Positions 68-64,000 of a DNA stretch of 64,000 bases are shown in pieces. The stretch spans positions 700,990 through 764,989 of the forward strand of contig OZ287705.1 in NCBI GenBank assembly GCA_965649825.1, written 5' to 3'. Numbering within the stretch: the first letter of the stretch is position 1; each line of letters begins with the position of its first letter. The stretch is from Penicillus capitatus (taxonomy: Eukaryota > Plantae > Chlorophyta). The notes under the pieces are model-generated. The model ran no database searches. It was not told the DNA's origin and saw nothing but the letters and a program-made list of their open reading frames with translations. The position numbers and the translations under genes are program-made.

Positions 68-896
68 ATGGAACCGCATCAATACAACCGTGGCTTCGCA
101 GGAAATGCGATGCGACATCCTGGATCTGCTCGCTGGTCGCCGCCACCAAGAGATCACCACCATCCGCGACGACCCCTCTCTCCAAACGTGCATCGCTCTG
201 GAGCACCGCGCCGTTCTCCTCCTCTCGCTCAGCCGCCTCTGAGACGACCTCCACGAGATCTCTCTCCGCCGTTGCGTCCAAGAAGAGATTCCGGAGACGG
301 TGGGAGTTTTCGAAGAAGAGGCGATCCGCCTGTGCGTCCAGACTACTTCAATGGCGAACGAGATCGTCGTCCGTATGGTGGACTGCCGCCTCGTGGTGAA
401 CCCGATTCGGATCGCCGTATGGAGACGTCAGCTGGAGGCCGTTACGGAAATCATCATCGCGATCCGCCGCACTCTCCTGGAAGAAATGTCAAGCGTCCGA
501 GGCACAGTCCTCCTCCAGCTGAGCAACGGTATCCTCTTATGCAAGAGAATTCGTGTGATCTTTTCTATATTGGTTTCCAGTTTTCGCCGTGAACCCGCCG
601 CCACGCATCATCGCAATCTCATGAACTCGCCGCATGAAAATCCGCCGAATCCCGATGTCGCCTCGACCGTCGTCTTGCGACATCCCGAGACCGAGTGCGC
701 CTGGTATTATGTGGATCCACAGGGCAACACACAAGGCCCGTGCACGATCGCACAGTTCAGAAGCTGGCTGAGAACTTTGGCAGAGGATCCTCGATTCGCC
801 GACGAGTACAAGCAGTTCATGTCCGTCGATGTTTGGAAAGAAGGCATGCAGAAAAAACAGCTGATGACGGAACTCTTGCAGCACAACAATCCTTGA
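68..896 (+). CDS. GYF-domain protein
   Basis: The Arg/Pro-rich ORF from ATG 68 splices through a GT-AG intron (529-580) into the frame carrying WYYVDPQGNTQGPCTIAQFRSW, the GYF domain signature. Confidence 0.8.
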
Positions 897-1221
897 TGGA
901 CCCTACCCACCTATCCCATAAATCGATGCTTCTGTGCAAGCGCTCTGGGTGGTTGCACGGCACTGGACAGACGAACCTAACCGCAGCTATTTATTCTCGA
1001 ATCACCATGGACTGGAGACACACACGCTATGGATCGATCACATCGTGGGTCCGTCGGTACGAAAGGACGGTTCAGTTGGGCAACGGACGCTTTACAATTT
1101 TTCTATTCTGTTTTGGAAATACCATCATGCCGCAGGATCTTTCTGGAATGGTGTTTTACGCACGTGGTGGTGATGGCCGACAACACCCTTGTCTCAACAA
1201 CAGCCTTTGTCTTCTGAGCCC

Positions 1222-3052
1222 TTATTCTCGATTGAGGACGTCCTGCATTTTCGTTCTTTCTTGCTGCTCCATAACGAACATCAGATCCGCTTTCAATGCC
1301 TAAGATTTAAAACGGTGCTGAGGTGACGCTAGCATACATGACAGCATTCTGTTCACCACCTTTTCAGCCATCGATATGAACGCTTTCTGTGCGAGCGGCA
1401 GTTGAGATGTCCATTTCCAGAAATCCACAGACACTCTCTGCAGCACACGGATCTCGCTGTCGCTGACTGGAAGGCACACGTGGAGCTGATGAATGTGTCT
1501 CCTCTTCTCTCGTACGCCGGAAGCGCTCACGTGCAGGACGGATGTCACACTGCAGGGAGGATGGAAGAAGGACTCGATTCCCTGTCCTCTCCAATCCACT
1601 AGCATCACGCAATCACGTCATCCAGACGCATAGACAAGACGGATCACGTGCGTTGGGCATCGGCGGCTGACGGTTGGAACCAGTGACCGAAGAGAGGATT
1701 TGCGGGTGTGACCTTCTCATCCAGCAGATGCGACATCAGCAGTCCTTTGTCCAGCGGAACGGTCGTTTCCACTTCGGAGAGGGTCACAAAGGCATCTGAC
1801 AGTTCGGCAAAGGAAGGCATCTCCTGAAAGCCATCCCCCTTCGATGTCATCAGGTTAGAGAGAAACGCACGGGTGATGGGGATGTCTGCGGTTCAGGCCA
1901 GACCCACAGGATCCCATCCTTCTCCAAGACTGGAAGCGATTCGATCCGGATGCCTGGCTGGAAGACGGTGCTCGGCATCTTGACACAACTGCCACTGCTG
2001 TTGTACTCCCATCCATGATAAGGACACGAGATCTGTCCATCGACGATCTTGCCAATGGACAACGGACAGGCACGATGGGCGCATTCGTCTTGAATGCAGG
2101 CTGGTCGACCAGAGGCATCGCGAAACAGTACCCAGGGCTGTCCATAGAGTTCGAACGGCATCAGCACCCCCTCCTTCAGTCTCTACACGGATGGGTAGAG
2201 AGGTGTCAGGGTGAAGGGTGTGTACCGTGGAAAAGGCGGCGGGATACCAGTAGTGCATAATACTGGGTCGAACATCGCTCTCCCTGAAGAGTCATCCATG
2301 TCAGCCACGGCTCACGATACGTCGTTCAGCAAAGCAGTGCTCACTTCGGATCATCGGCTGGGGCATCTTTCAATGCGTCTGCTGGCAGATGCTGTTGGGC
2401 GAGTTCGAGCTGACTCTGTCCAGGATGGACATGATCGAAGATGCGGCGAAGTGTGACCTTCTCACTTTTAGGTACCGAATGTGACTCAGATTGTGCAAGA
2501 CACGTGATTGCGTCGCGTGCAGTTTCTGCAGAGACAGGCAACACGTCGGCGGCGCTGCGTTGCTGAGGCAGTTGGTCACACCTCATGTGCGTCTCTCACT
2601 TCCTTCTGCAGCTCCGTCAGTTCCTTCCTCAATTCCACGACGCTCTTGGACTCCTTCGATTTCGCACTCAATGTCATTTCCACCTTCTGACTCGCTTCTT
2701 CGATGGTCTCTACGGTTGCCGCGGCCTCGCCTTTGACAATGATCTCGTAGACCATATCCCAGTTCTCCTGCTTCTTCTTCAGGTACTCCACTTTTCGACG
2801 CACCTCCCACGGCGAGGCCCCCATGAGACGCTCGTTGAGCACGGCCAGGTCGAGTAACTGATCGGGACAGCGATTCTCTGGTCGGCGATAGCGAATACGT
2901 GGCACACGGCGCAGCCAACTGAAAGGACGGCGCCGGTCATTCGGCCGAGAAGACGGCGTTTTTGCATCGGGGCCGTTCTCTGTGGCTGACAGGCGCCACG
3001 ATCGACGGCCGTCATCGCCACCGAGCCAATAACGCGCAACTGTCCTTGACAT
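1222..3052 (-). CDS. CAO: Chlorophyllide a oxygenase-like Rieske protein (mononuclear-iron His ligands absent), multi-exon
   Basis: It has the chlorophyte CAO N-terminal segment LLDLAVLNERL..PWEVRRKVEYL..NWD, then HYWYPAAF, the Rieske motifs DECAHRACPLS and CPYHGW, FHPPC and HQLHVCLP, and a last exon ALKADLMFVMEQQER. Confidence 0.9.
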
Positions 3053-3161
3053 CTCCCGTCGCCTCGTGTCGTACCAATTCCGTCGAGAATTTTGCTTTTC
3101 GTACCCATCGCTGTCGCTCGGTCACTCACTCGTACGCACGAACGTACACACCGCCGCGCTG

Positions 3162-3539
3162 ATGAACGCTTTTACGTCGCCAGGAGCGGCTATGGTGGAT
3201 GCCTTGGACAAACGCATCCTTATCTCCCTCCGTGACGGCAGCCTCTTTGTCGGGGATTTGCGCTCCTTCGACCAGTACGGCAACCTCGTCCTCGAAAGCT
3301 CCGTGCGACGCGAGGTGGTGGGCAATCAGTTCTGCGACATTCCCAAGGGTCTCCAGATTATTCGGGGCGAGAACATTGTGCTCTTTGGCGAAGTGGATCC
3401 CTATTGCAGCATCGCCCCGGAGCTCATTCGCGTCAGCGAGGCCGAGATTCAGAGGGCCAAAGAGGCAGAGAAGGAACAGGAACGACTGAAGGGAAGCATG
3501 AGGGGTCGTTTCGATTTCTTGGACAGCGTCATGGAATGA
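3162..3539 (+). CDS. LSM1: Sm-like protein LSM1, intronless
   Basis: Sm1/Sm2 motifs LDKRILISLRDG..GDLRSFDQYGNLVL and GLQIIRGENIVLFGEVD. Confidence 0.92.
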   Translation: MNAFTSPGAAMVDALDKRILISLRDGSLFVGDLRSFDQYGNLVLESSVRREVVGNQFCDIPKGLQIIRGENIVLFGEVDPYCSIAPELIRVSEAEIQRAKEAEKEQERLKGSMRGRFDFLDSVME

Positions 3540-3627
3540 ATCGTCGTCCCGCCATCCACGATGACCCATCGATCATCATTTCGATTTAAGTGACAAGACG
3601 TGACGTGCGACAGCGCCCTGAGACGCG

Positions 3628-4854
3628 ATGCAGCACGATCACTTGATTTGGGAGACGATTCGGAAGGGCTGCGCTTTTAAGAGGACATTCAGCGATCGAC
3701 TGTTCTGTCGCAATGAGTATAATGTGACGGGTCTCTGTAATCGAGCGAGCTGTCCGCTGGCGAACAGTCGATACGCGACCGTGCGTGAAGAGCAAGCGCG
3801 ATGCTATCTCTACGTCAAGACCGTCGAGCGAGCGCATTCGCCAAAGAGGCTGTGGACGAAGATAAAGTGCGCGGGGACGGATATCGAGATGGACTGAAAT
3901 GTCGGTGCGGTGGTGGCAGATTGAGTAAGAATTATCAGAAGGCGTTGAAGCAGATCGATGACGCTTTGGAGTATTGGCCGGAGATCACGATTCACAAGAG
4001 CAAGCAGAGGCTGACCAAGATCTTTCAGTATCTGCTGAGAATTCGGAAGCTATCCGAGCTGCCTCGGCCGAAGATTGTGCCCATTCAGCGAAAGTATGAT
4101 AGATGCGAGGGATGGATGTTGGTTCGAGCGCATCTTTGGTGGCAGTGTGGAGAAGGTGGACCGAAAGAGAGAGGCGCGTGCGGAAACGGTGGCGCGGATT
4201 GAGAATGCCATCGAAGATGAACTGCTCAAGCGATTGCAGACGGGGACGTACGGAGAGATTTACAACTTCCCGATGCACGAATACAACAAAGCAACGATTT
4301 CTGGTCACGCTTTTGCAAAGGCAATTAAATGTGTGAGCCAGACGTTGGAGAGAGAAGTGAAGAAGGCGCGCGAAGTGGATGTCGAAGCCGACGAATTCGA
4401 AGAAGCCTACGAGAGCGAAGAAGAAGCTGAAAAAGTGTGATGCCCGCAGCGACTATGTGGTCACACTTTTCTGTGCGATGCAAGGATATCGAGTATCTCA
4501 GCGATGTGGATTTTGAACAGAGCGATGAAGACATGGAAGATCTGGAGCAGATCCTTAAGCCTCGTCGAGCACCAAGTCCTTCAAACGGCGGCGGCGGCAG
4601 TCCCAAAGGTCATACACACGCTTCGCTTGACAAGATACCGAACATATGTGCAGCAGAGAGGCCACCAGATAAGAAGTCTCGCAGAGAGCACCAAAGGTCA
4701 GCTCTCCTGGCAGAGCGCTGCTGTCTTATTAGTGGCGATGCAAACCGTTGTCTGTTTCAGGAAACCGGTAGGAAAGAGAAAGAAGCCAAGAATCGAGCTC
4801 GAGATGGAAGAGGAGTTCTTATCGGCATCGAACGTGCAAACAGGAGAGGGTTGA
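3628..4854 (+). CDS. MAK16: Ribosome biogenesis protein MAK16, multi-exon
   Basis: MQHDHLIWETI..FCRNEYNVTGLCNRASCPLANSRYAT, SKQRLTKI and IENAIEDELLKRLQTGTYGEIYNFP, followed by an acidic C-terminal tail. Confidence 0.93.
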
Positions 4855-4871
4855 GTCTGTTACGGCTAGGA

Positions 4872-5874
4872 CTATTTGCATCGCCGTCTCTTGTTGTTGT
4901 CGGGCATCAGTCTGTTGATCTCATCGATGCTGCATCCGCTCTCTTCGTCCACCTCGATGCCGATCTCTTCGAAGACTTCTTTCTTGTTTCTATTGAGATT
5001 CTCAGACAAGGCGCCCCTAACATCACAGAGCCGCATTCCGTGGAGGAGGGATTAGAGGGGCTGACAGACCAGATTTCGGAGAAGGCAGATTTCCAGTTCT
5101 TCCACTGCCGCAGATGGTCGCGCAGTTTCTGTATGTGGAGATGAATGCAGGCACACAGGCAGACATACGGGAGAGTGTACCTTCTCAGTCGTGGCTCTCT
5201 CTTCTGGCTGCACAACAACGGACTTCTCTTTCAGCGTGGACAGTTTCTCCGTCGACTCTTCCTTCTGCAGAAATCTTTGATTTGTGCCTTCTCTTGTGCA
5301 TAAACTGGCACGTCGCCGCACCTGAGTCTCCAGACGTTGGATTTCGCTCTCGATCTCTTCCAGAGTACGCATCGATTTCAAAGCCGCATACTCTAATAGA
5401 TTATATCCTCGACACAGAGAGGCAGTCAAAAGCGATGTGCCTTTTTTGAGTTGATGCAATTCTTCCTCCTCTTTCTTGACGAGGGCTTTGCTCTCATTGA
5501 CTTGCTGCTTCTTCGCATCCGTCTCCTGTGGACAAATGCCATAGAGATGCGCATCCGTGACGGCGCAGTACGTGCCTCTTTGGTTAGGACGTCTCGATTG
5601 GACTGGATCGGCCAGAAGATGCGCGTCTTGCCAAACTCCTATCGTCGGCAGGCATCCACGTCGCACCGTTTCGTCGACATCACGATAGGCAAGAGCGCAC
5701 TTTGACGGTGATCTTTCCTTTCTCGGCCAGCGTGTCCATCGTCTTCTGGACTTGCGCCTTTTTGATTCCGAACTGCGCCACGAAATCCGCGACGACCTGG
5801 ACACTGAAAGGCCGGTTCTGGTTCTGGAACAGTTCCAGAATGTGATGCTCTGCAGTGGCGGCCTTTCCTGACAT
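4872..5874 (-). CDS. HOP2: Meiotic homologous-pairing protein HOP2/TBPIP, multi-exon
   Basis: Winged-helix start ILELFQNQNRPFSVQVV..FGIKKAQVQKTMDTL, EFGKTRIFLADQS, a coiled coil, and a spliced C-terminus WKNWKSAFSEIWGAL..FEEIGIEVDEE. Confidence 0.88.
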
Positions 5875-15056: not shown

Positions 15057-15875
15057 GATAAGGACCGCCCAACCCACTCAGGCAACAGGATAGGATGAAG
15101 GATGGGAAGATGCAGTATCAAGCAGCGCCCGCCGTTCGTACAGATCCTACAGGTAGGCATAGGTCTAGCATCCACATACGCGATTGCCGTGCAATGCGTT
15201 TAAAAGAATGAGGAGAGAGACCGTTTTTTCAGTTGCCTACAACAGCCCGATCAAGTAACCCGCCTCTGATTCTGCATTGATTTTATGTGTTGTTGGGGCC
15301 TCAGCCATTCCAATAGAGAACACGCCGCATCTCATGCCCGAATATAATACTGAGAGAAATCATGTCTGAGCATGCATGCATGTATGTATACATGCACAGA
15401 CCATCAAGATAACCCATATGAGCTCTTCAAGATGCTGATGGTATCAGTAGTGAGCTTTCGATCATTCCGCTTGCTGGAAAGACTTGAGAACGAACGTCAG
15501 ACAGGACAGTCCATTGCTTACCGTCGGACTGCGGCTGTTAATGAAAATTTGCGCACACGGCCGTGCTTGCAAAAATCGAAAGTGGGAAGAAGAAAACCCC
15601 CTCTTGTAAAATAAACGCGGTGGCCATGTCACAGAGGGAACGACTAATGAAAGAACAAATAGAAAACGGTTCACGTATTCAAGTACGACTTATGAAATGA
15701 TTTGAAGTCCGATGCTATGTACATCGTGCCACGGCACTCTGTACGGTCAAGATCTTCGTCTTTATCAAACAACATCAAGCACAACAGCAACATTGTTATG
15801 TCCAGTCTACCCTTGTGTGTGTATGTCGGTAGGTAGGTAGGTTGGTTGGCAGGTCGGATTCAATTTCCATCTTCT

Positions 15876-18586
15876 TCAGGCTTGAGAGTATCGCGCCCTT
15901 CGAAGACCAGCAAGGCTCTTCAGTTTTTGAAAGCGTTGTCCTTTTGGGGGTTGTTGGGTACTCTTTTCTTTGCCAAGGGCGACGTCTGAGTCACAGCTGT
16001 CGGTCCTTGACCTTCTAAAACTAACAGATAAAGTTGATGCTCTCTTATCTGTTTTCCGGCTTCGGGTTGATGGTAGACTAAAGGACTGGCCTCTAACTGT
16101 TTTATTCATTTCCGCCAACAGGTCTGCCTGGTCCTTAAAGGACAAAGTGGCGGCGGATCCAAAAGAGTTCATTCTCGATACGACTCTTTCCGCCTTCTTC
16201 TTTTCCGCTTTCTTGGATGCCTCGATGCTCTTCATCCTCTGAAAGATCTTTGACAACATTTTCTTTTCTTCACAATCGCTTTCCATTGCACGGCTAGCAG
16301 TAAACAATGAGCTATAGGCACCAGACTGGACCACTTGATCGCAGACCTACACAGAAAATAAAGACGGTATGTATAACGGCGGCGGCGGCGGCCGTATGGA
16401 TGTGCGTTACCTCGTCCAGAGCAAATTTGGACATCTTGCACAGAACATAGACCGTGTCCGTTTTGAGTCTCGGATTGGCTTCTTGGAGAAATTCACAGAG
16501 CTGTGGGATGATGGAAGACGATGTCAGATAGCTGGAGCACTCTTTGAACGAAAGACTCTTGAGAATCTCAAATCCGAGTCGCTTGAGCTGAATACTACAA
16601 CTATTGACGAGTTCTGCAAGGACATCAAATCCGCAGTGCTGGGCCAGAAGACGCGAGGTCTTCACTGGAAGTGCAGTAAGGACATTCATGACGATGTCAT
16701 GGATTTCTTGACAGACAATTCCGGTAGGAGTCACGAATTCTAACAAGCGCGAAAGAATGCCTGTGTCACAAATTGCCCGAGCACCAGGCTTCAACGCCGA
16801 CACGGACTGCAGCACGGTAAAGAGATGATCCAGTCCAGGTTCATGTTGAAAGGGTCCTTCTCCTGATTTCTGCTGATCTAAGAAGTCTGTAAAGAGAACG
16901 TCGGTTTTGGGCACGACCCCGAGGTCGATGCATTGTTGGGGTGTCTCGATTGGGCCCTTCTCGATGATACGGGCACACAGGCTCCAGCATCGTCTTCTGA
17001 GATTCACGCAATCGCTGTCAAACCATGCCACAATGTCTGTGAGCACTCCGGTGGCAAGAACATCGTCACAACGGTCTTCTTCTTCGATAAGTTTGGTAAG
17101 GATATTGAGGACAATCAATTTGACGGCACTTGTGCCTTCGTTCATTTCTGTTCTGAGGCGCTGCAATTCTGAGGAACCCAAGTTTTTTGCCATGGCCTGA
17201 CGTGCGACAACGTCCGCTTCAATCATGGAATGGATGATATGGAGTGCCGCCTGCGTTACCGACATCGCATGCGGTAACTGAGCAAGGAAACTGTCACTCT
17301 TGGCCAAATCGGTCGCCATTCTATCGTGCATATCCCATGCCACGACCAAGATATCGATGGCCTTGGATGCACACGCTTTGGTATCCCTCAGAATAATGTT
17401 GCTCAGAAAATGCGCTTCGTCCGTTCCGACGTCGAACTGTTTGCGGTGCACGGCATCCAACAGTCCGTCGAGGAGATGGAGACGCACAGATTCGAGCTCT
17501 TCTCCCTTACCCTGCTCGTAGATCTCTCTGAATAACATGTATGCCATCTGGGCAGGTAGATTCTGTAGATCTTTGCCATTGGATGCGTTGACGTTCTTTC
17601 CAAAGAGCGCAATCGCCAATGGTTTAATCTCCGCATCCTCCATTCTGAGCAACGGTGTCAGAAACTGCACGACGTCGTCTTCCTTCAATTTCGCTGCGAC
17701 AACGTCGACGTGCTGGATCTCTGCAAGGCATTTGAGAGCGCCCAGTTTGGTTGGCAGCTCATTCTCTTCCCTCAGCATTTTAATCAAGGAAGGCAGAGCA
17801 CGAGAGAGAAGAGTTTTGACTTCGGCGTCGTTGTCCTTGGAGACGAGACGCACCAGAGACAGAACAGACGTACAAGCGTAAGTCGCCACTTCGATCTCGT
17901 TCTCATAATCGATCTTGTCTAGAATAAAATCCATAACCTTGCATTCCATAAAGGTCTGGCCAGACCATACATACACACATAGTGTGAGAAAACAAAGACG
18001 TCACAGTACTTAAGCGCACCTGGCAGTACTCAAGATTATGCTGAATCAAAGTCGTCATGCATCTTAGTGCCCCTTCACGTGTTTCGCGTCTCTTGGCGGT
18101 GATGAGGCGCTTGACAATGGTCAGGACTTCCGCCGGCTGCAAAAGAAGTGTCGACTCTTGGCCTAAGCACAGCCTCGCCAGGAGGTCTGCACAGGCGAAA
18201 GAGCCGTCCATGTCCGTCGTCATCGATGCCATGCATGAAAGAAGTTTTTGAAAAAGCGGTATCACATTGAGCAGGACTTCCTCCTCATCGAGTCTCGTAA
18301 AGGACCCCATTTCACCTGCATGGGTACCAGGGACCCACGCTTGTTTCAGAACGGCGTTAAGATCTCTGGGATGTCTGGCAGCGATGAGAAGCTGCACCAG
18401 CGAACCGACGAGATTCGCGTCATCTGAAACTTCGCGTTCGCCTTCGCCTTCGCGTTCGTCAGGTGGTGACCCCTCGTGGCGGACCGTCGATGAAAGGGAG
18501 AGGTCTTTGGAATGGTGAAAATGCAGTGTCAGGGTGCCGTCGTCGTTCGACGTCAGTCCGACGCCGACCACTTTGTTGGACACCAT
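15876..18586 (-). CDS. Armadillo/HEAT-repeat protein
   Basis: Long helical, Leu-rich open frames (554 aa core) with ARM-like patterns such as IIPQLCEFLQEANPRLKTDTVYVLCKMS. Confidence 0.7.
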
Positions 18587-18949
18587 TCGGTCAGTTCGGC
18601 AGAAGATGATGCTGTCCAAGAAAGGCACTGTTGTTTACTGAGAGACTCGGCACGGAGTCCACTCAACGTGGCCAGACAACACAGAGCAGTACACGTTCAG
18701 TTGTATCAATCAATCGACAACAGTCTACGCAATTCCAATCCACTAACGCCGCTGGAAAAACGGTTCCTACTGTGGGAACGCAGCTACGCCCGTTTGAATT
18801 GATAAGAGGCGTTGTTGGAAGAGATTTTTTGAGCTTCGAGGCACAAGTCAACAAGTCGCGTCGTGCGATAAGCGCCCTTCTTTTCCTAAGGCTTTGATGG
18901 AACAAACGTCTGACTGGACGCTTTGGATAAGCTCCTTGTAAGATGTCTT

Positions 18950-19345
18950 CTAACCGACACGCATCTTCGTCATCTGCGAAAAAATGCACGCCGTGTAAAT
19001 GACGACGCGGGAGTTTCTGTGTCTTGTCGTCTCGGTGAATGCCGCCCTTGCATTTGAGCTCGGCATCGGTCGGCCGAAGGAGACGGAGAGCGTCTTGACG
19101 CATTCGCCATTGATGACGGTCGCGTCTTCGAGACACCAGGAGCATTGAGAGACGTCAACGGCGGGGGTTGCCTCCTTGCGCTGATTGGACACCGTGTCCA
19201 GCTCTGTCCAGTAGCGCCGCCGGTTGGCGAATTGGCGGCGGAGGCGGATGTTGACGTTCTTCTCGGTGAGCTGCACGACGATATCCGCGACGCTTTGCAA
19301 AAGGGCGACGAAAACAGTCCCACAACATGAGATGGTTTTGTACAT
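18950..19345 (-). CDS. Uncharacterised ORF3 whose ATG overlaps the IspE stop (TGATG)
   Basis: MYKTISCCGTVFVALLQSVADIVVQLTEKNVNIRLRRQFANRRRYWTELD..., 131 codons unspliced. It may splice onward toward 18663. No family recognised. Confidence 0.5.
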   Translation of the reverse strand: MYKTISCCGTVFVALLQSVADIVVQLTEKNVNIRLRRQFANRRRYWTELDTVSNQRKEATPAVDVSQCSWCLEDATVINGECVKTLSVSFGRPMPSSNARAAFTETTRHRNSRVVIYTACIFSQMTKMRVG

Positions 19346-20478
19346 CACCCTTGTACGACGGCACTGGTCGTCCAGGCATTGCTCGGCGTGTACCACTTCC
19401 CCGCCATCCGGTTGATAAGTCGAGCAGGCGAGACGAACAGATCGCTGTATTTTTCTTCCTTGGATAGGAAATCGGGAACGTCGTCCGATCCAAAGCATAC
19501 GATGGTGCTGCCGCTGCCTGTCATGAAAACCGATTCGAAATTGCCTTCCCGTTTCAGCCTTTCTTTCAGTTCCGCCAGCTCCGGAAGAATGGAGAAGGCA
19601 GGAGGCTCAAGATCGTTGACACACAGCTCCTGGGTGATCGTGCCTCTCTGCCGCAACCCATCGAGCAACTCCAGTGGATCTGCCATGCTGCGGCCGTCCA
19701 AATCCAGTGTCTTGAAAATCTGAGGCGTCAATAGACTGACGGGAGGCTTGACGAGGAGCATCGGCGTGGACAACGGTATCGGCGGCATCACGTTCTCCAC
19801 AATCTCCCCGCGACCTGCATCCCCTCGCATTGCCATTGAAAACCGCAAGAGAGAGGACCTGTGCAGTAGGCAGCGCCTTCGGAGAAGAAGACGGAGATGT
19901 CAGATCCGATCTCCCCCGACCAATCCAGCAGATCCTGATTCGATGCAACCTGCAGCACAAGAGGGGTAACACGGTTGCGATGCTGCCGGAGGGGCAACGT
20001 TTCCGCAGATTTCGTTGGCTGCCCACAGAGTAGTGGCTGCGTTTGCACTTCCGCCGCCGAGTCCAGCTCCATGAGGCACCGTCTTCTGCAGGTCGATATC
20101 GAAATGCTGTTGGATGTCCGTCTTGGAACGGTAGAGATTCAATGCCTTGATGACGAGATTGGAATCGTCAGTCGGAATGTCGGCGATGTTACACGTCAAT
20201 CGATCGCTCTTTCCTTCGATGGGTGCCATCTCCATACGGTCTCCCAAATCGATGACATGAAAAAGAGATGCCAGATCATGAAAGCCATCTGGCCGACGCC
20301 CCATGATTCTCAAAAACAGGTTAATTTTAGAGGGAGAAAACACCGACAGTCGATCGGATGCGCCCAGTGCACTTGGTCGTGCCACACAGCGACGCTTTGG
20401 TGAATGTGCGTGATACCATCGGCCTAAGGGTCCACGGTTATGCGTAGGGGTCTCCGATCTCAGACGCAGAAGAGACAT
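19345..20478 (-). CDS. ISPE: 4-diphosphocytidyl-2-C-methyl-D-erythritol kinase, plastid (MEP pathway)
   Basis: SPSKINLFLRI..RPDGFHDLASLFHVIDLGD, GAGLGGGSANAAT, SDISVFFSEGAAYCTG, NDLEPPAF and FMTGSGST, preceded by a transit-peptide-like N-terminus. Confidence 0.95.
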
Positions 20479-20786
20479 CAGGTGGATTTTGGCGTTTCAA
20501 CGTCGAGAGCGACGTAGGGTTTCAATTCGAAGTTCAGTAAAGAAGGCACGACGTATCTCGGCCTCTTCAAGGGAGACACAATGTATCCTCCTGCAGACAT
20601 CCCTCGCCTGAGCAGACCTTCGCTTTCTGGCGACAGAGATCGACCTTTGGCCGTGTGTCTTCCTGTCGGCAGGCACCCTTTGCCCTTAAAGTATGTTTTT
20701 GCGCCGCGTTTTGAGCTGAGTTGCCAGTAGCCTTTCGTCGGTGCACGCTTTGCTCGCACAAAGGCAGCCAAGATGCGTGTAAGCAT
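20478..20786 (-). CDS. MRPL41: Mitochondrial ribosomal protein mL41 (L27 family), one in-frame intron
   Basis: LSSKRGAKTYFKGKGCLPTGRHTAK/GGYIV..RPRYVVPSLLNFELKPYVA. Confidence 0.9.
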   Translation of the reverse strand: MLTRILAAFVRAKRAPTKGYWQLSSKRGAKTYFKGKGCLPTGRHTAKGRSLSPESEGLLRRGMSAGGYIVSPLKRPRYVVPSLLNFELKPYVALDVETPKST

Positions 20787-20929
20787 GCCGATGGATGATG
20801 TGACTGGCTGGGATCAACGGATTCAGAGTATTCATCCGTACGACCCTTTCGGCGGCGCAGAGCAATCGACCAGACCATAAAGACAGCACCTCCGAGCACT
20901 GCAAATTCTTGCCGATTTCGATAGCCACG

Positions 20930-23192
20930 ATGTCCGACGTGTTACAGAGTCATGCCTCCCTCTTTGACGAGAAGGTGATGGAGATGACGTCGAGGAGTCA
21001 CCGTCAAGCACGACGCTTCTGTCTTTGTGCAGACCAGTGGATTTCTGCAGTCTTTGGTGGCGGAAGGCCAAGAGCATCTGTTTCGCGATTGGCCAGCACT
21101 CGGTATTCCTTTCAGACAGCGAAACGTCGCATCGCGAGTGGAGATGGTTGGTAGGAACGGGCGACGACGATAAGAAGAGATTAGTGACGCAGCTTCAGGG
21201 GATCGATGCATCGACGGAAGGAGGTCTCATCGAATACGTCCGTCGAGCCAAAAAGCTCCTCGACGAATCCAAACGCGGTGCGCATCGTCCTGCGTCTGGT
21301 GTCCCCGCACAGGCGTCGGTGGATGTGTAGGGGTGAATCCAATGGACGGCTATACGCCCAGTGTGCCAACCGGCAAGAGCCTCGACTTTGGCAGCGATGC
21401 ATTTCAGCAGCTAGAGAATCAAGGCAGAGAGACATCGATCATCGAGATATCGGCAAAGCGGTGTTGTGTGATGCAGGCGTCGTCGAAGCGGGGAAGTCTG
21501 TCTTTGTGTTGGTGGCCGGCGGCTTAGGAGAGCGTCTCGGGTTTTCTGGCATCAAAGTGGCGCTTCCGTGCGAGACGGCCAGATACACTTCGTTCCTGCA
21601 GCTGTACATTGAGAGCATTCTGGCCATCCAGGCCAAGGCCCGGAAAGAAGGCAGTCCTGATCTTCTCCTTCCTTTTGTCCTGATGACGTCGGATGACACG
21701 CACGCGCGAACAATGGACTTCCTCGAACAGCATCAGTACTTTGGCATGCAGAAAGAGCAAGTGTGATTTTGTGTGACCGTATGAAGATAGCGAAGAGCGG
21801 GTGTGTGGTGTGGACGCAGGTGCATGTCTTAAAGCAAGAGAAGGTGGCATGTCTGGCAGACAGCGATGCACGTATCGCTCTGGAGAAGAACGATGCCTAT
21901 GTCGTAGAGACGAAGCCGCACGGCCATGGCGATATCCATTCCTTGATCCATTCGAGCGGCCTGCTGTCGGGCTGGGTGGCACAGGGCCTCAAATGGCTCT
22001 GTATCTTTCAGGATACGAATGCTCTCGTTTTCAATGGACTGTTAGCGGCACTGGGTGTCAGCGCCGCCGAAAACTATGACATGAATTCTCTGGCCGTTCC
22101 GAGAAAGGCCAAAGAGGCGATCGGTGCGATCGCTACGCTGAAACACGAGAACGGATCGGAGATCACGATCAACGTCGAGTACAACCAGTTGGATCCGATG
22201 CTGCGGAACACCATTAACAAAGAAGGAGATGTCAATGACGCCACAGGATTCTCCCCGTTTCCTGGCAACGTCAATCAGTTGGTGTTCAAAGTGTGACTTG
22301 TGTGGTGTGATGTGACGTGGCCACGATGGATGTCTGTTTGTGCTTAGCTGGATACATACATGGAGCAGCTGAAGAAGACAAGTGGCCTCATTTCGGAATT
22401 CGTCAATCCAAAATACAAAGATGCCACGAAAACGGCGTTCCAGAAATCGACCCGACTCGAATGCATGATGCAAGACTATCCAAAAACGCTCTCGGCGGAA
22501 GCGAAGGTCGGATTTACCACCATCAACCAGGTCCGTCTCTTCAGACCTGTCACATCATCGTTCAGTATCAGGCGTAGGTGTGGGCAACGTACTCTCCTGT
22601 CAAGAACGCCGTGGCGGCGGCTGTGAAGAAGGTCGAGGAGGGATGCCCACCGCACAGCGCGACGGCAGCAGAGGCAGATCTGTATGAGTCCAATTGCAAG
22701 AGGCTAACGCAGATCGGCGTACACGTCGGCGAAGCGGACGTCTATACCTTCAACGGCATGCAGACGACGTTCCATCCACGTGTGATGATCACGCCTTCCT
22801 TTGCCTTGACGTTTCAAGATCTAAAGGTGCGTGGCCTCACACGGTGAAAGAATACAGAGGCGATGCCGGACGTTGGATCCAGGACAAATTTCCGTCCCCT
22901 TCACGCGTGACCATCAAGAAAGGATCCGTGTGTATCTTGGACGGATCCAGCATCACGGTCGAGGATCTGGAATTGGACGGCGCGCTCGTCGTGTCAACCA
23001 CGAATGCATTGACGATCAAGGATGCAAAGGTACGAGCCTTGGCGTTGTCGAATTGCTCAATCGGCGGCGTGTGTCTTGCAGATCGCTAACAAAGGATGGG
23101 CAGTGAAAGCCGTGGAGGACGACAGTGCAGTGGCCGAAGAGATTCGCATTCGCGGATTCATTTTTGACAAGATCGAGACGGAGACCATGTAA
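20930..23192 (+). CDS. USP: UDP-sugar pyrophosphorylase, multi-exon
   Basis: [81 protein letters not shown] and YSPVKN. Confidence 0.95.
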
Positions 23193-24845: not shown

Positions 24846-27800
24846 TTAAGCTTCGAGTTCTGAGGCGAGTTCGCCCAGCAGATGTCGAGGAGAGTTCAGC
24901 GATGTGTCCACCATCATCATCATTCCTCCGTTCGACATAAGATCGTACGATCGGTGAAATGTCACAGGCTCATCTGCATCGGATTCCACCAATCCCGGAA
25001 TCTCTTTCGGAAGCTTGTCGGCGATCTCTTCAGAATTGTTGTTCAAACACTGCATGGCGACCTGCAACGCAACGGGTTCCGTCGGAGAGTGCTCCACCAT
25101 GGAATACGGGGACGATCCGGCATGAACGGCACCGTAAGAAGGCGTCGAGCGAGCAGGACAGGAAGGCATGGCATAGGGCGGCAGCATATCATAGTGTGGC
25201 GCTCCGGGAACAGAGACAACGGGATAGGCGGGTGGCGGCGGCGGTGGCGGCGCTGCTGGAATCATCAGAGATCCGTAACTGCCTATTGGAGAGTAGGTAC
25301 CAGACATGAACATCATTTGCACAGCAGGACCACTGTCGTGCGCCGTATAACGTGCCGTCTCGCACGAAAGCGGCGAATACAGTCCGTTCTGACTCCCACC
25401 TGCGTTCTTCTCCGGAGATGGATCTGTCAGATCACTGGCGAATCCGACAACGGATCGATCCATCGCCGGCGTCGTATACATATCCGATGGGAGACAGGCG
25501 GATTGGACACTGGTCAGTGGCTCGGAATGTCTCCTTTCGGGTACGGCAGCCGAGAGCACCGGCGAAGCATTGGACCCAAACAGTTCATACTCTGGATACG
25601 ATTCGATCGAGTGCTCGACGGTATGCACCGTGCCAGACGACTCACTGGAGGAGCACTGCATGGCCTGGCTCACACTGTCGCTGTCTGTCTTTGGACACAT
25701 GGAGATGGAGGAATCTTCGGACAGCGACTGTTTGTCAGACTCCAATCTCCTCGAAGCAGCACGTCCAAGAAGGACAGGCGCAGCTGACATCGATGTGGAC
25801 GACTGCAGCGGAGGGAAATCTGGATCTGACAGGGACGGTGCGTGCACCGGAATCGGCAACGGTTTACCTGAGGAGATCTCCCAGGCCGTTTTGGACGTCT
25901 TGCCTTGGCCGGAATCCACGCTGGCGGCTCGCACGATCACAATATTGCCGTTCCGATGGACAACGTCCTTCTCCGCATCGATCCTGCTTTGAATCACGGC
26001 CTTTTCCGAAGGCTTCGGGATCGACGCCAGCACCACCTTCTGCGTTTCTTCCATCTGCTGTGGACTGCAGAAACTGGATACCGGCAGCCTGGACGACGTG
26101 ATGGATTTTGCACTGGACAGCGACAGAGAGCGGTGAGGCAGTGACTTCTGTTGATGTTTCTGTCCAACCTGCTGCCATCCAGCCGCCGTTCCACCATTCA
26201 TCGCATTCTTCTTCACTCCGTTCCCTTCATACAGCGTGCCGCTGTTTCGCATCGCTGGTGGTTTTCTCCGTCCAGCGCTCGCTGTGACCCAGCCTTCATC
26301 ATCTGCCTTTGTTTTGGGCGTGGATCCTGTGAGATGGTCTTTGGCATGTCCATCGCCATCTGCCGGTTTGGATGTCTCTTCTGGCAGGGATTCGATCAGA
26401 GACTGCAACTTTCGGCGAACTTTCCGTGCGTACTTCGCGCCCACGTTCTCCTGTTGTGCGTTCGCAATGGCCTGGTTGATTTTCTCGACGACATCCATCA
26501 TGGCATCGCGCCCAGCAACGCTCCCGATTTCCAGTACAAAGTTCGCACAGTTGACGGCCTCTTCCAGTGCTGCCTTGATGGCACACCTCGTGCTTTCTAA
26601 GGAATCGTCGGGATCGTTCTTTTGAGCATCCGAGAGCTTCTTGAGACTGGAACGACGTCCAGAGTTCTTTTCCGGACTGTCTGGGTCCGTCGATCGATCG
26701 CTCTGTTTCTTGTTCTTTCTTCTGGATGACGATCGTTTGCTTTCGGCCGCCGCCGCCGCTTCCGCCGCCTCCTCTTCTAGAAGCGCCGCCATGTTGGCGT
26801 CGGCGCGCTCCACGCGCTCCTCATAATCCGCTGCCTGTTCAGCAGCCTTGGCCCACGCATCATCGAAGCAGTCTTTCTCAGATTTCCGAGCCGCCTCTCC
26901 ACCCATGTACGCCCTCTTCAGTTTCGCCTCCAGAAGTTTCTGCTGTCGCGTTGTCTTTCCATGCTGCCCACACAGAACAAACGCCGGCGAAGCGCCATCA
27001 ATACCATCGGCCTTTGCCCTCCAATCACAGCCAAGCAAAGCAAGTGTATACATCATCTCCTTCTTATTCGCCATAGCTGCGTGATGCATGGCGGTGCCAC
27101 CAACGCTGTCTCGGCTGTTCACGTCTGCTCCCAAATCCACGAGCTTCAGCACCATGAGCTTGTCGCCGCAACCGGCAGCAAGATGCAGTGCCGTCCGTCC
27201 TTCGTTATCTCTGGCACCGATGTCGGCACCGAGCTCAACGAGCTTCTCGGCGACAGGCAGTAATCTGGATCGGTCCTGTTCCATCTGTGACATCTGCAAC
27301 GCCTCTGTCTTCTTGAGCAGCAACTCCAGTCCCTCTCTTTCCCGTTCAAAATCTCGACTCCACTTGTCCCACTCATCATCGTCATCATCCTTATGTCGGT
27401 GGAGATGATGATGCTCTTTGTCGACCGTCGTCGTCTCGCATCTATAGCTATCCAATGCGGCATCTGGATTCAAAAAGAGCGATCCTGGCCGTCTTCCACG
27501 TGTTGCTTTCCTGAGAAGACTCATGAGTTCCGCCCCCTTCCATGTACTGCATGATCGTGCGTTTGATGGTAAGTGTGCTCTATCCAAATCGTTCAAACAC
27601 ATACTACTCAGCGTCTCTGAGTTGCCTGTGCGAAAACGATGCGTTCGTCAAGAGAGTCCGGTCGTCAGGAAGACTGCCTACCCAGAGTGGCCCATGCAAA
27701 ACCCGTCCGGACAGGCACCATGCCTCCAAAACTGCTAGACTCCTCTCTGGAACCTTTCGACAGTACGGACGACGATACACCGGATCTCCTTAAGGACAGA

Positions 27801-29860
27801 CTGCCGAGTCCCTGAGCACAGACATCCCCATTATGGCAAGCAAGGAATGGAGAGGAGGTGCCGATCCTGCCTGCAAGTTTCCATTGGAGCCTGCCGTGAC
27901 GCCAGACGGTACGTGAGCCAACGCAGAGTACGTTCCGTGTGCTGTGTTCTGCAATGGAGTGCATTCTGACATATCGCGTGCATTTAGATCGGCACCCAAT
28001 TCGACCAGTTTTACAACGGCATCGAGAAATCCGCAGCCGGCTGCCAAATGAAGAGGCGTATTCTGAGCGTTGTCTCGACTGTGTACAGAACATCCAGCCT
28101 GCAGACAGGCCAAGATCAGAAGTGCCATGGACAGAGGCCTCTGCCATGCCTTGACAAGTGGATCAATGACATGCGCCTGACCAAAAGCAGCGGCATAGTG
28201 TAACGGCGTGCTGCCGTCCTTTGTTTGGGAAGAAACGGCAGCTCCATGTTTGATGAGCTTCAAAACAATGTCCTTTCTCCCGGCACGGGCGGCAATGTGC
28301 AGTGGTGTCTCCACATTGCGATCGTCGGTCGCTGGTTTCAACCTTGCCCCTAATTCTACCAGCAGTCCAATAACATCCACGTGTCCCGGACCCTGATCAC
28401 ACGCATTGCTCGCTAAGAGCAAGGTGGGAGAATGGTATGGACCTTCATCGTCGCCAGCTGCAGACATGTCCACCCCTTTGCCGTCTTGACCTCTGTATCT
28501 GCTCCAAGTTCGATCAACTTGGCAACAGCTTCGCACTGTCCGGCATCGGCTGCCAAGTGTAAGGGTGAGTATCCTGCTCTCGTGTCGCACTCTTTTAATG
28601 TGGCACCGAGTTCTAACAGTCGCTCGATGGCGGAAGCTCGGCCGTGCAAGGCTGCATAGTGCAGGGGTGTCCGTCCGTGGCAGTCTTTCACATCGACGGC
28701 GTGATTCAAGTCGACCAATACAGAGATGGCATTGACCCATCCCCAATTGGCCGCCGAATGCAGCGGTGTGAACTGATACGTGTCTCTGCTGTCCACTCGG
28801 CAGCCCAGTTCTGTCACAAGAATGCGTATTAAATCGACCCATCCTTGTTCGGCGGCGACGTGGACGGCAGTTCTGCCCTCTTCACTCTGTACCCATGACG
28901 GACAGCCCAACATATGCAGCTTCCTCACGACTTCGATCCGATTCCATGCAGATGCGCAGTACAACGGCGTGCATCCGTCTCTGTCCTTTGCAGCGGGATT
29001 ACCCCCCAACTGAATGAGCTTCAAGACAGCCGGCAGATGTCCTTCGCCGCACGCAACATGCAATGGCGTCGAACCCACAGAATCTCGAACGTCGACTTTG
29101 GCACCCAGCCGAACCAACGCTTCGATCGATCCCACCTGGACACAGAAAACAACACATCACGCTCTTACGGACGTCGCTTTCGTCGTTACCTGATTGTAGG
29201 CGGCCGCATAGTGTAGAGGTGTCCATGTGTTGGCGCTTTGGCAGTGTACGTCACAGTTAAATTTCTTGATCAGCTTTTCGATATTCGACACCTTGCCTTC
29301 CATCGCTGCAAGATGCAATGCAGACCATCCGAGGATCTGTTGGACAGCAGAGATGCCTGTCTTGCTGGCATCCTCTGTTAATTGAAGCACTTCCTGATTT
29401 CGCCCATCGCACGCAGCAATGTCCCAACCGAGATGGAGAAATCCTAAGAAATCTTGCATGCAGCCACGTCGAGCGACTTCATGCAACGGTGTACAGCCAG
29501 ACGTATCTTCCAGTAGAGCAGCTATCAGCATCGATATCAATTGTACCTTCCATCCCATTCATCTTCTCACTCTCCAATGAGATGATCGCGCACTTGATTT
29601 TGAACAGCTGCCAGATGGACAGGTGTGCAATTGAGTATGTCACGTGAGAGTAAGACAGCAGGTCCTCCGTGTTCCAGCAGTCCCTTGATGATTCCCAAGT
29701 GTCCTCGCATCACAGCCAAATGCAGAGGCGTCCTGCCTTCTGCATCTCTTGCCGTGACGTCCGCCCCCTGCCGAAGCAGTCGGAGTAACTCCTGCTCGTT
29801 TCCTTTGCGTGCAATCTTGTGCAGCAGTGTTGACCTTGGTCCAAGACTGGCAAAAGACAT
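24846..29860 (-). CDS. Large ankyrin-repeat protein, multi-exon, with low-complexity C-terminus
   Basis: Many G(R/S/C)TPLHxAA ankyrin repeats across ORFs 29567-29860, 29157-29558, 28413-29135, 27790-28400 and 24846-27602. Joining them into one gene is inferred. Confidence 0.78.
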
Positions 29861-43000: not shown

Positions 43001-45555
43001 TCTAGCGCCCCCTCTGTGGTCGGTTATGCCGCCGGATTCTGGATCCACGATCTGAAGCGAGTCCACCCTGCCTGCCATGTCTGGGCCGTAGATGCCGCCA
43101 GACTCCTTCAGACAGGCACACTAAGAACAACGGCATGTGCCTTCTGTGCGACGCTGTACCAGGACCCTGTTGGCTTCGAAGTGGAAGCAGTCCGTCAGTG
43201 GACTGCTATCGATCTGTGCTCGACTCAGCTGCCTCCAGTTTGCCACGTCTGATCGCGATTTGCCGCACCCGACGATCACCAGCCCCGGATCCGCGACGAA
43301 CAGGCCGCCGGCCCCGAAGGCGGCTGTGTTCCCGATGAAGGACATGTTGAACAGGTGGAACAGCCGACACGGCTCGATGTCGAGGACATTGGTTTCACAC
43401 TTTGTATCGTCTCCGGTGCTCCAGTTGCCGACGATGCTCACGAACATGCCACCTGCGACGTGGAATGAGGAAGAAGAACGTCTCTCGTGAGCCTGCGTTA
43501 CCTCCGACCAGCGCATCGTTGTCTTCGAAGTGCGTCTCCTGTGTGCTGATGTCTGCCATGGCGCTGTCCGGAACACCGCCGTAGGCCAGACACACCCCGC
43601 CGCCTCCTCCGTTGCCGCAATGCCTGAGAGAGTCCTCGGCGATCACGCTTTCCTCCTCGCTCGATTCTCTCCTGTTGAGACCGGAGACAGACGCCGATTT
43701 CAGTTTCCTGCCGAACGGTGGGATCTGTGCTGACAGATCGGCTCTGAGGTCATCGCCGTCGACCGCGTGGTTCTGCACGAAGCGGCATCGTTTCATCTGG
43801 CACAGACAACCGTGCAATGGGTGGTGCATCGCCTCCAGCGACCGGCCATACCTGAAGCGTGTTCTCCTTCTGTCGGTTCCCTTCCACGAAGACGCCGCCG
43901 CCTGAAGCTGCCTTGTTCCGGAGAAACTCGTTCCACCACTCCGACTTCGCCGATCCGAACGTCACACTTGCAGCAGATCTCAGGGCCGCTCCTCCTCCGT
44001 GCATCGCGACATTGTCGTGGAAACGTGACTCCTCAATGCGGACGTCCCGCGAAGAATCCAGGACGAACAGACCGCCTCCCGCTCTCCTCGCCCTGTTCCT
44101 CTCGAAGTTCACGTTCCTCAGCAGCATGGTCCCGCATCCAGCACACATGAGACCTCCTCCATCCACGGCCGAGTTCTCCGCGAACAGGTTCCGTGTCTCG
44201 GGATCTTCGTTTCCAGAGCCGGCCGACACCGGCTTCGCAGTGAAGCGCGCTCCATTTGTCAGCATCACCGCCCCGCCGAGGCCGGCTGAGTTCCTCCGCC
44301 ATGTCGTGTTGCGCTGCGCGATGCCACCACTGTTCCGAAGAAGTGCCGCTCCTCCTGCCTTTTCGGCTCCGTTCCCGTCGAACATGCATCCATCGATGTC
44401 GATGTTGACCAGATGCACTGTGACAATGTGAAGAGCGCCGCCACTCGCTCCAGCACGATTGGCCTTGAAGGTCGATCGCATGATCTCAAGGGTCTTCAAT
44501 GCAGCAGAGGCAGCGGCAAAGTAGATGGCACCTCCGATGTTCTCCTCCGTATTGCTCCAGACAGTTTCTTCGATGATCGCGGCCTGGTTGTCTTGAAAGT
44601 GGCAACCTTCGACGCGGACGAATATATCGTTCTCAAAATCCGTCAGATCGTTAGCGTCCAGCGTTGCGTATATGGCGCCGCCACTCGTCGCCCTGTTTGT
44701 CAGGAATTCTGTCCCGATCACGCTGAGCCTTTCAACTGAGCTCACAGCAACGGCACCTCCACCATTGCCAGGAGATTTGAAAATGAAGTAACGGTCATGC
44801 TCGATCAACTCTCCGCTTCTTCGGTATACCGTACCATCCAAGCCCCCTTCAATCACTGTGTTGTTGCGAAAGTGAGAGTCGGATATCTCCAATTGCGATC
44901 CTGGGTCCGTCACATAGATGGCTCCTCCTTTTTGATTGGCAAGATTGTTCATGAAATTGGAACGAAGGACTTTGAGAGTGCACTGTTCACCGTAGACAGC
45001 GCCGCCCATATCCGATTTGTTGTCATCAAAAACCGAGTCCCTTATGATCACAGTGAGGGGTATAATGGCCATGCACCACCACTTGGCCAGGCAACCCCTA
45101 GCAGAGATCGCACCACCAGCTGGTTGATAGAGGTCGAAATTTGAGTTGTTGCGAAAAGTCACCCGGTCAAAGACAACACTCTCGTGAGGACAGTTATCAT
45201 TGTCCAGTTCAATCAACACCGCTGGGTGACCCCTGCAGCCTTCAAATGTGAGCGATGTGATCGTGACATTTCGTACCCTAGACAGCACATACAGTGAAGA
45301 AGAGAATGAGAGAAGCCATGGTGGTACTCACGCGATGTTGAGGATGCTGTCATCTTCTGGACAGACCAGTATGGTGACTTCATGAGATTCGCCTCTGAGA
45401 TGTACATCGTGTTGTTCGATCCACAAACTCTCCGACAAGACGAACACATTTCCACTCAAGTTAATGGTTTCGCCAGACTCGGCATTGCTCATCGCTTCTT
45501 TGAGCTCATCCACTGACGACACGTACACACTGCCAGTTTCCAGACCTACAGACAT
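40083..45555 (-). CDS. Large beta-helix (pectin-lyase/Pmp-like GGA..FxxN repeats), Cys-rich, multi-pass membrane protein
   Basis: Repeated GGAIY/GGGxxV plus FxxNxA motifs, Cys-rich CSSCPADRYS..QCPGG..GYWH and CAEGY..LCGSC..GY, then several C-terminal transmembrane helices (WEGVVFIRKALI). The 5' end is uncertain. Confidence 0.8.
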
Positions 45556-63800: not shown

Positions 63801-64000
63801 TGTGGCGCGGCCTTTCCGGATTCGACATTTCGGCACACTACGGCCCACGGCGGGCCCACCGTCGGCAATCTTCGACGCAGACGGGTGCGGGACGCCTCGG
63901 GACTCGCCGCGGATGCCAATCGGTGGAGGTTCGTATGGCTCTGGGCGGTGTCGCACTTGGTTGAAATCGAGGCGGTCACGTCGCATCAGGTGTAACCTGG
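54785..64000. repeat. 329-bp GC-rich tandem satellite: 27 full monomers (55103-63986) plus one degenerate edge unit; continues past the window end
   Basis: The anchor CATCAGGTGTAACCTG recurs every 329 nt with no indels. One monomer counted by hand is about 66% GC with a G-rich plus strand. Confidence 0.98.

Follow-up and report, generated by a model that had tools for sequence, protein, structure and literature searches.

The 64,000-nucleotide (nt) stretch of Penicillus capitatus DNA analysed here (contig OZ287705.1; hereafter the window, meaning the whole of that stretch) carries two genes on its minus strand, between positions 20786 and 19345, that share a nucleotide. The first (open reading frame 1; ORF 1) encodes the mitochondrial ribosomal protein mL41, and the second (ORF 2) encodes IspE (CMK), a kinase of the plastid methylerythritol phosphate (MEP) pathway. 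We propose that this is a conserved bicistronic nuclear locus, in which one mRNA would carry both ORFs and IspE would be reached by leaky scanning, a reading to which we give a probability of about 0.58. An initial annotation of the window had likewise supposed that one mRNA serves both genes, and four observations point the same way: the two genes lie close together in four lineages, ATG is avoided in ORF 1, a TGTAA that might have ended mL41 transcripts is not conserved, and mL41 precedes another ORF on a transcript contig (L032) from another chlorophyte. Such a locus would add a deeply conserved pair of clear identity to the green-algal bicistrons, many of which involve proteins of unknown function, and would extend the phenomenon to Bryopsis (Ulvophyceae) and to the lineage of the window.

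Organization of the mL41–IspE locus

At the junction the minus strand reads TCC ACC TGA TG TCT, so that the mL41 TGA (20480-20478) and the IspE ATG (20478-20476) have one A in common, at exactly the coordinates previously reported. The mL41 ORF begins with the ATG at 20786 and has 84 codons, with a spliced coding sequence (CDS) of 255 nt (20786-20645 plus 20590-20478) and one intron; the IspE ORF has 346 codons and two introns and ends at the TGA at 19347-19345. Comparisons below are with two metagenome contigs (L001 and L002), a 20-kb genomic contig from a sequencing run (L003), a 285-kb contig of an ENA metagenome assembly (L004), and Bryopsis sp. KO-2023 (L029; GCA_030272585.1, BSYQ01000012.1). 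The features of the locus are as follows.

20787-21205, no strand: intergenic region of ~420 nt, from the mL41 ATG to a divergent UDP-sugar pyrophosphorylase (UDPGP) gene
20645-20786, minus strand: mL41 exon 1; ATG at 20786-20784, codons 1-47 and the first base of codon 48; aligns with mL41 of L001, L003 and Bryopsis
20591-20644, minus strand: mL41 intron; 54 nt, GT..AG, phase 1, in frame and stop-free; contains the ATG at 20600
20478-20590, minus strand: mL41 exon 2, including the stop TGA at 20480-20478; matches mL41 in the PDB
20476-20480, minus strand: TGATG junction, identical in L001/L002
19999-20478, minus strand: IspE exon 1; the first ~45 codons (20478-20344) are presequence
20189-20193, minus strand: TGTAA within the IspE CDS (Cys-Asn codons), earlier considered a possible mL41 poly(A) signal
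19950-19998, minus strand: IspE intron 1; 49 nt, with a homologous intron in L003
19859-19949, minus strand: IspE exon 2
19815-19858, minus strand: IspE intron 2; 44 nt
19345-19814, minus strand: IspE exon 3, including the stop TGA at 19347-19345

The IspE frame is closed upstream by an in-frame TGA ending 18 nt before the ATG, and the next Met is residue 59, which lies within the conserved core, after SPSKINLFL; the initial annotation was therefore right that no other Met precedes the core. Its further statement that the spliced mL41 CDS has no ATG past the start in any frame, and that the single remaining ATG sits in the intron, was borne out as well: the sole other ATG of the locus is at 20600, inside the 54-nt mL41 intron. 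The nearest ATG upstream of mL41 (20835) precedes its start by 49 nt and lies in the ~420-nt region (20787-21205) that is presumed to serve as shared promoter and as 5' untranslated region (UTR). The same divergent UDPGP neighbour is present in L001, L002 and L004.

The unspliced mL41 ORF (102 amino acids; aa) is open too, the intron being in frame and without a stop. We accept the intron on two grounds: its orthologue in L003 contains a stop, and mL41 aligns without a break only once the intron is taken out. In-frame, stop-free introns at this position, in the window (54 nt) and in L001 (3842-3892; 51 nt), are read through by automatic gene callers, with the 101-aa protein P0001 as a result, and retention of the window intron would give mL41 18 extra residues and place the sole ATG upstream of IspE. 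There is an annotation gap here, in that the Bryopsis mL41 was left uncalled and the metagenome mL41 was read through its intron; small first ORFs are easily missed.

Identity of the two proteins

The assignment of ORF 1 to mL41 and of ORF 2 to IspE/CMK is confirmed by profile and sequence matches. The mL41 ORF matches Pfam PF09809 (MRP-L27) at 1.1e-15 (57.8 bits against a cutoff of 25), and among chains named mL41 in solved mitoribosomes the best match has E = 2.1e-18, with the Arabidopsis chain in 6xyw at 3.8e-18. IspE scores 183.2 bits with the TIGR00154 equivalog model of NCBIfam (cutoff 138.7), matches both GHMP_kinases_N and GHMP_kinases_C, and shows the motif PHGAGLGGGSANAA as well as the N-terminal SPSKINLFL. 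The first 43 residues of IspE include 9 Arg+Lys, 2 Asp+Glu and 7 Ser+Thr, and its N-terminal ~45 residues, which are basic, rich in Ser and Thr and poor in acidic residues, resemble a chloroplast transit peptide. We see no functional link between the two proteins.

The best named matches to IspE are all from core chlorophytes, at 58-70% identity, and the protein collection searched contained no full-length spliced IspE closer than 68% identity to that of the window. In a neighbour-joining tree of IspE the window and L003 group together at 100% bootstrap; this is the sole supported grouping, and the tree gives the two no position among the core chlorophytes. From the IspE matches we take the host of the window to be a core chlorophyte.

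Conservation of the pair and of its junction

The initial annotation had suggested looking for the same adjacency in related algal genomes, and the pair is kept in L001/L002, in L003 and in Bryopsis sp. KO-2023. In L001/L002 the spliced mL41 is 74% identical to that of the window and also ends in TGATG, and the ORF begun by this ATG continues into the IspE core. In L003, the IspE of which is 76% identical to the window protein, the mL41 TAA is followed after 7 nt by the IspE ATG. In Bryopsis a three-exon mL41 (L029 4059-4940), missing from the genes called at the locus and having one internal in-frame Met, lies directly upstream of the annotated IspE (BSKO_12435); its stop ends at 4940, and a 60-nt, A-rich, ATG-free spacer leads to the IspE ATG at 5001. 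The junction distance in the four lineages is thus an overlap (window), an overlap (L001/L002), 7 nt (L003) and 60 nt (Bryopsis).

The intron structure of mL41 is shared as well. All four lineages have its first intron at one and the same codon; it is very small (39-54 nt) in three of them, with 54 nt in the window, 51 nt in L001 and 39 nt, including the stop, in L003, and 195 nt long in Bryopsis; a second intron is common to L003 and Bryopsis. Synonymous sites are saturated among all four lineages (proportion of synonymous differences, pS, 0.73-0.85), so the junction has been kept through a long divergence, and the ratio of nonsynonymous to synonymous change (dN/dS) of about 0.05-0.12 indicates that ORF 1 is under purifying selection. 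The window and L004 are 99.9% identical over 3.8 kb, with 3 mismatches and one gap, and therefore are separate assemblies or haplotypes of one organism. The gap is an apparent 1-nt indel in a C run of IspE intron 1 (window 19950-19998 versus L004 8481-8528).

From these sequences we conclude that the mL41–IspE pair is conserved, though not universal. No mL41 was found upstream of IspE in the loci examined from Coccomyxa, Chlamydomonas schloesseri, Micractinium and L005, and 19 other metagenome mL41 loci have no IspE alongside. An IspE transcript in MMETSP (L006-L008) has its IspE start at most 88 nt from the contig end.

It could be supposed that the IspE start has been mis-assigned, in that an upstream exon supplies the true N-terminus, with mL41 nested in an IspE intron, or that frameshifting or readthrough yields an mL41–IspE fusion; the introns in this locus are tiny and easily missed. 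In the spliced RNAs of the window, L001 and L003, however, the IspE frame offers no start before the junction ATG, in-frame stops lie 18, 6 and 42 nt upstream of it, respectively, and the ORF opens at an ATG at or next to the mL41 stop. From there it encodes a transit-peptide-like presequence of 32-44 residues, which has diverged among the three, yet the ORF from the junction ATG into the IspE core stays open. The NCBI model of Bryopsis IspE likewise begins at the first ATG after mL41. Readthrough of the mL41 TGA would reach another TGA five codons on, and inspection by eye of the last 40 nt before the junction showed no conserved slippery heptamer. A mis-assigned start is thus very improbable, and we rejected an upstream IspE exon, readthrough and a frameshift fusion on the grounds of the in-frame stops, the open ORF from the junction ATG and the want of a slippery heptamer as judged by eye.

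Avoidance of ATG in ORF 1

The sequence from the start of ORF 1 to that of ORF 2 has 0 further ATG, where composition leads one to expect about 3.4. Among dinucleotide-preserving shuffles of ORF 1, 5% (window), 10% (L001) and 5% (L003) contain no ATG. Expressed per 255 nt, the downstream ORFs have 3.9-6.2 ATG, and ORF 1 has none in three of the four IspE-pair lineages, the Bryopsis ORF 1 having its one in-frame Met.

A comparison at synonymous sites is more discriminating. We considered codon pairs in which the synonymous choice can make an out-of-frame ATG (xAT followed by G, or xxA followed by TG) in six mL41 first ORFs and in the downstream ORFs of the same loci. None of the 14 at-risk pairs in the first ORFs makes an ATG, as against 66 of 125 in the second ORFs (Fisher one-sided p = 6e-5); restricting the comparison to the four IspE-pair lineages gives 0/10 and 32/64. 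The Tyr-Val of the LKPYV sequence illustrates the pattern: every mL41 gene paired with IspE has TAC GTN, and L022, an mL41 that stands alone and contains three internal ATGs, has TAT GTG. Where a synonymous choice would form an ATG, ORF 1 avoids it and ORF 2 does not.

mL41 as a first ORF with other partners

mL41 also precedes other genes. The MMETSP transcript contig L032 (2835 nt) has mL41 at 135-392, followed by 39 ATG-free nt and a 703-aa Kri1 ORF at 432-2543, with TGTAA motifs close to its 3' end; mL41 can therefore be ORF 1 of a real two-ORF RNA. In L009 (164-941) mL41 is followed by a 73-nt ATG-free spacer and a 147-aa ORF of no known identity, and an MMETSP transcript encoding a closely similar mL41 protein (P0125; 1177-nt contig) has the same layout. 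In L036 (919-1571) a 92-nt ATG-free spacer separates mL41 from a TPR-like ORF. From these layouts mL41 stands repeatedly in the first-ORF position with different partners, and it may be a recurrent first-ORF gene with at least four downstream partners in chlorophytes (IspE, Kri1, a TPR-like protein and an unknown protein). If mL41 is truly a repeated first ORF with changing partners, this bears on the origin of such loci.

Relation to known bicistronic genes

Exclusively polycistronic nuclear loci have been established in green algae by Iso-Seq, proteomics and in vitro translation (Gallaher et al. 2021, PMC7896298), and mutational work in Auxenochlorella identifies leaky scanning as the main mechanism (Duenas et al. 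2025, PMC11892635). The Auxenochlorella bicistrons have an ORF 1 of median 291 nt, AUG depletion before ORF 2 and a median inter-ORF distance of 40 nt (PMC11892635); Dataset S01 of that paper includes five loci with an inter-ORF distance of 0 and others with 2, 5 or 10 nt, and many ORF 1s without an internal start codon. The architecture seen here, including the 0-nt inter-ORF distance and the AUG-free ORF 1, is thus already documented in green algae (PMC7896298; PMC11892635, Dataset S01).

The mL41–IspE locus shares with that class the chlorophyte host, a short ORF 1 (255 nt) that is AUG-free up to the ORF 2 start, a tiny or zero inter-ORF distance, functionally unrelated partners, and collinearity across distant chlorophytes. 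It differs in that the published loci were defined by Iso-Seq and Ribo-seq whereas mL41–IspE is known here from genomic sequence, in the weak context of ORF 2 in both overlapping lineages, and in the lack of the adjacency at the Coccomyxa, Chlamydomonas schloesseri and Micractinium loci examined. Judged on its sequence, the locus fits the published class in every feature tested, the comparison of start contexts aside. The pair was not found in the supplementary tables of PMC11892635, and a text search of the literature gave no report of it.

Cellular bicistronic genes are not confined to algae, and the mL41–IspE locus resembles two of them in having a small first ORF that encodes a real protein. 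In human MOCS2 and Arabidopsis CDC26-TTM3 the second ORF is reached by ribosomes that skip the first AUG. They differ from the locus described here in gene and lineage, and the overlap in MOCS2 is longer than that of mL41–IspE.

Transcription and translation of the locus

In the model that we favour, a single capped mRNA would start in the ~420-nt region shared with the divergent UDPGP gene and would carry mL41 as ORF 1 and IspE as ORF 2. Part of the scanning 43S complexes would initiate at the mL41 AUG, and the remaining complexes would pass through the AUG-free ORF 1 and initiate at the next AUG, the one that overlaps the mL41 stop (UGAUG). The overlap of stop and start may also let 40S subunits coming straight from termination on mL41 reinitiate at this AUG, as a secondary contribution. 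The mL41 AUG has G at -3 and C at +4, and so is not in the strongest context; the window IspE AUG has C at -3 and T at +4, and that of L003 has A at -3.

Leaky scanning appears the most likely route to IspE because it has been demonstrated in this group of algae, because ORF 1 is AUG-free throughout, because the pair persists in relatives whose spacers are 7 nt and 60 nt long, and because no reinitiation element was seen. Some room would be left for termination–reinitiation, since UGAUG has survived in two lineages despite saturation at synonymous sites, and the context of ORF 2 in those lineages is weak.

Several points weigh against the proposed model. The at-risk sites lie mostly in mL41 exon 2, and an IspE mRNA starting inside mL41 explains much of the avoidance equally well. 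Homologous at-risk sites across species are, furthermore, not fully independent observations. The mL41 gene of L033, which has a convergent neighbour and is followed by no gene on the same strand, is also without internal ATG, although it has only two at-risk sites, so that mL41 is in part ATG-poor by composition. Leaky scanning leads one to expect a strong context for ORF 2, and the IspE start is weak in both TGATG lineages (C or T at -3, no G at +4). Contigs such as the MMETSP contig L032 may be assembly merges of overlapping transcripts, and the window lineage and its close relatives were found as genomic contigs only.

The main rival to a single mRNA is that there are two separate, overlapping transcription units, with IspE mRNAs starting inside the mL41 gene (in the intron or in exon 1 or 2) and mL41 mRNAs ending inside IspE, each being translated conventionally. 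This explanation draws on the tight gene spacing (137 nt separate the IspE stop of L003 from the next gene), on the concentration of ATG avoidance in mL41 exon 2, the part that would serve such an IspE mRNA as 5' UTR, on the presence of a TGTAA at 20193, and on the purely genomic origin of the contigs noted above. The TGTAA is indeed at 20193-20189 on the minus strand, as the initial annotation had it. However, it consists of Cys-Asn codons and is absent from L003, where the homologous codons are TGC AAT; the motif is thus not conserved, which weakens the suggestion that it could serve as the mL41 poly(A) signal. Exon 1 of mL41 is ATG-free as well in the window, L001 and L003, and in these lineages the junction distance has stayed at 7 nt or less across saturated divergence, which would be needless if the transcripts were independent. 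In addition, L032 has mL41 and a downstream ORF on one transcript contig, and published chlorophyte loci of the same anatomy are exclusively bicistronic by Iso-Seq. We consider separate transcripts unlikely on balance, though by no means negligible.

As a poly(A) signal TGTAA is uninformative here. Past the IspE stop, the next 3.5 kb of the minus strand (window 15800-19345) have no TGTAA, and in L003 there is none from upstream of mL41 to inside the fifth gene (300-5048). Either TGTAA is not a poly(A) signal in this lineage or the transcripts are long, and at 0.5 motifs per kb per strand its absence is within chance.

If the two ORFs are on one mRNA, IspE might instead be translated mainly by termination–reinitiation, with mL41 being translated first, termination occurring at the UGA, and the 40S subunit restarting on the overlapping AUG. 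The retention of UGAUG in two lineages whose synonymous sites are saturated would be in keeping with this; a pyrimidine at -3 of ORF 2 would matter less, and the authors of the algal studies left some reinitiation possible. On the other hand, reinitiation after ORFs of ~84 codons, the length of ORF 1, needs a special element. No UGGGA motif occurs in the three spliced ORF 1s (window, L001, L003), and folding of the junction gave no significant RNA structure upstream of it (z = -1.28 and -0.87), which together argue against a dedicated reinitiation element. The spacers of 60 nt in Bryopsis and 7 nt in L003 show that the overlap is not essential to the pair, reinitiation would not require avoidance of ATG far upstream of the stop, and the mutational tests in Auxenochlorella favour leaky scanning. 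We regard this route as the principal one for IspE as quite improbable.

Overlapping stop and start codons are well known from reinitiation in eukaryotic viruses, such as the calicivirus TURBS (termination upstream ribosome-binding site), the UAAUG of influenza B M1/BM2 and the AUGA or UAAUG of victoriviruses, and also from retroelements. The likeness to mL41–IspE is in the overlapping pentanucleotide and in the second ORF lying in another frame. The viral systems differ in needing an upstream element, either a motif complementary to 18S rRNA or a pseudoknot, of which none was detected here, and mL41–IspE is a cellular nuclear pair the relatives of which tolerate 7-nt and 60-nt spacers. Translational coupling in prokaryotes has the same pentanucleotide geometry at its TGATG or ATGA operon junctions, whereas mL41–IspE has spliceosomal introns, no Shine-Dalgarno logic applies and eukaryotic scanning does.

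It also seems improbable that the UGAUG overlap is functionally required, such that a ribosome reinitiates after all 84 mL41 codons without a helper element of the viral type. Were this so, the output of a plastid isoprenoid enzyme would be coupled stoichiometrically to that of a mitoribosomal protein in a cellular nuclear gene. The lineages with an overlap and those with 7-nt or 60-nt spacers form a natural experiment, which could separate leaky scanning from reinitiation.

Other features of the window

The IspE stop is also situated within a TGATG (19347-19343), and an ORF follows it on the minus strand (window 18950-19347). In L003 IspE is followed by a longer gene that contains DnaJ; the window ORF is homologous only to residues 212-316 of that gene and has no DnaJ part. 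The homology changes frame near 19080, and the same frame change is present in the independent assembly L004, as L004 has a single gap in the 3.8-kb alignment, apparently within IspE intron 1. Rather than being a third cistron, the ORF is probably what remains of a truncated gene.

A scan of the window for further tight pairs of a small and a large ORF, with at most one intervening ATG, gave only spurious ORFs besides mL41–IspE, and an Rfam search of the window found nothing. At its far end (55101-64000) the window contains a tandem array of a 329-nt unit in at least 27 copies, with 95% matches, ~66% G+C and a strong GC skew, which runs off the window end and which accounts for a jump in composition and a ladder of ORFs of 186-204 aa. 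A 512-aa ORF on the minus strand at 43750-45288 has Chlamydia-PMP repeats and a right-handed beta-helix region, and large ankyrin-repeat ORFs are present at 24846-27602 and 27790-28842.

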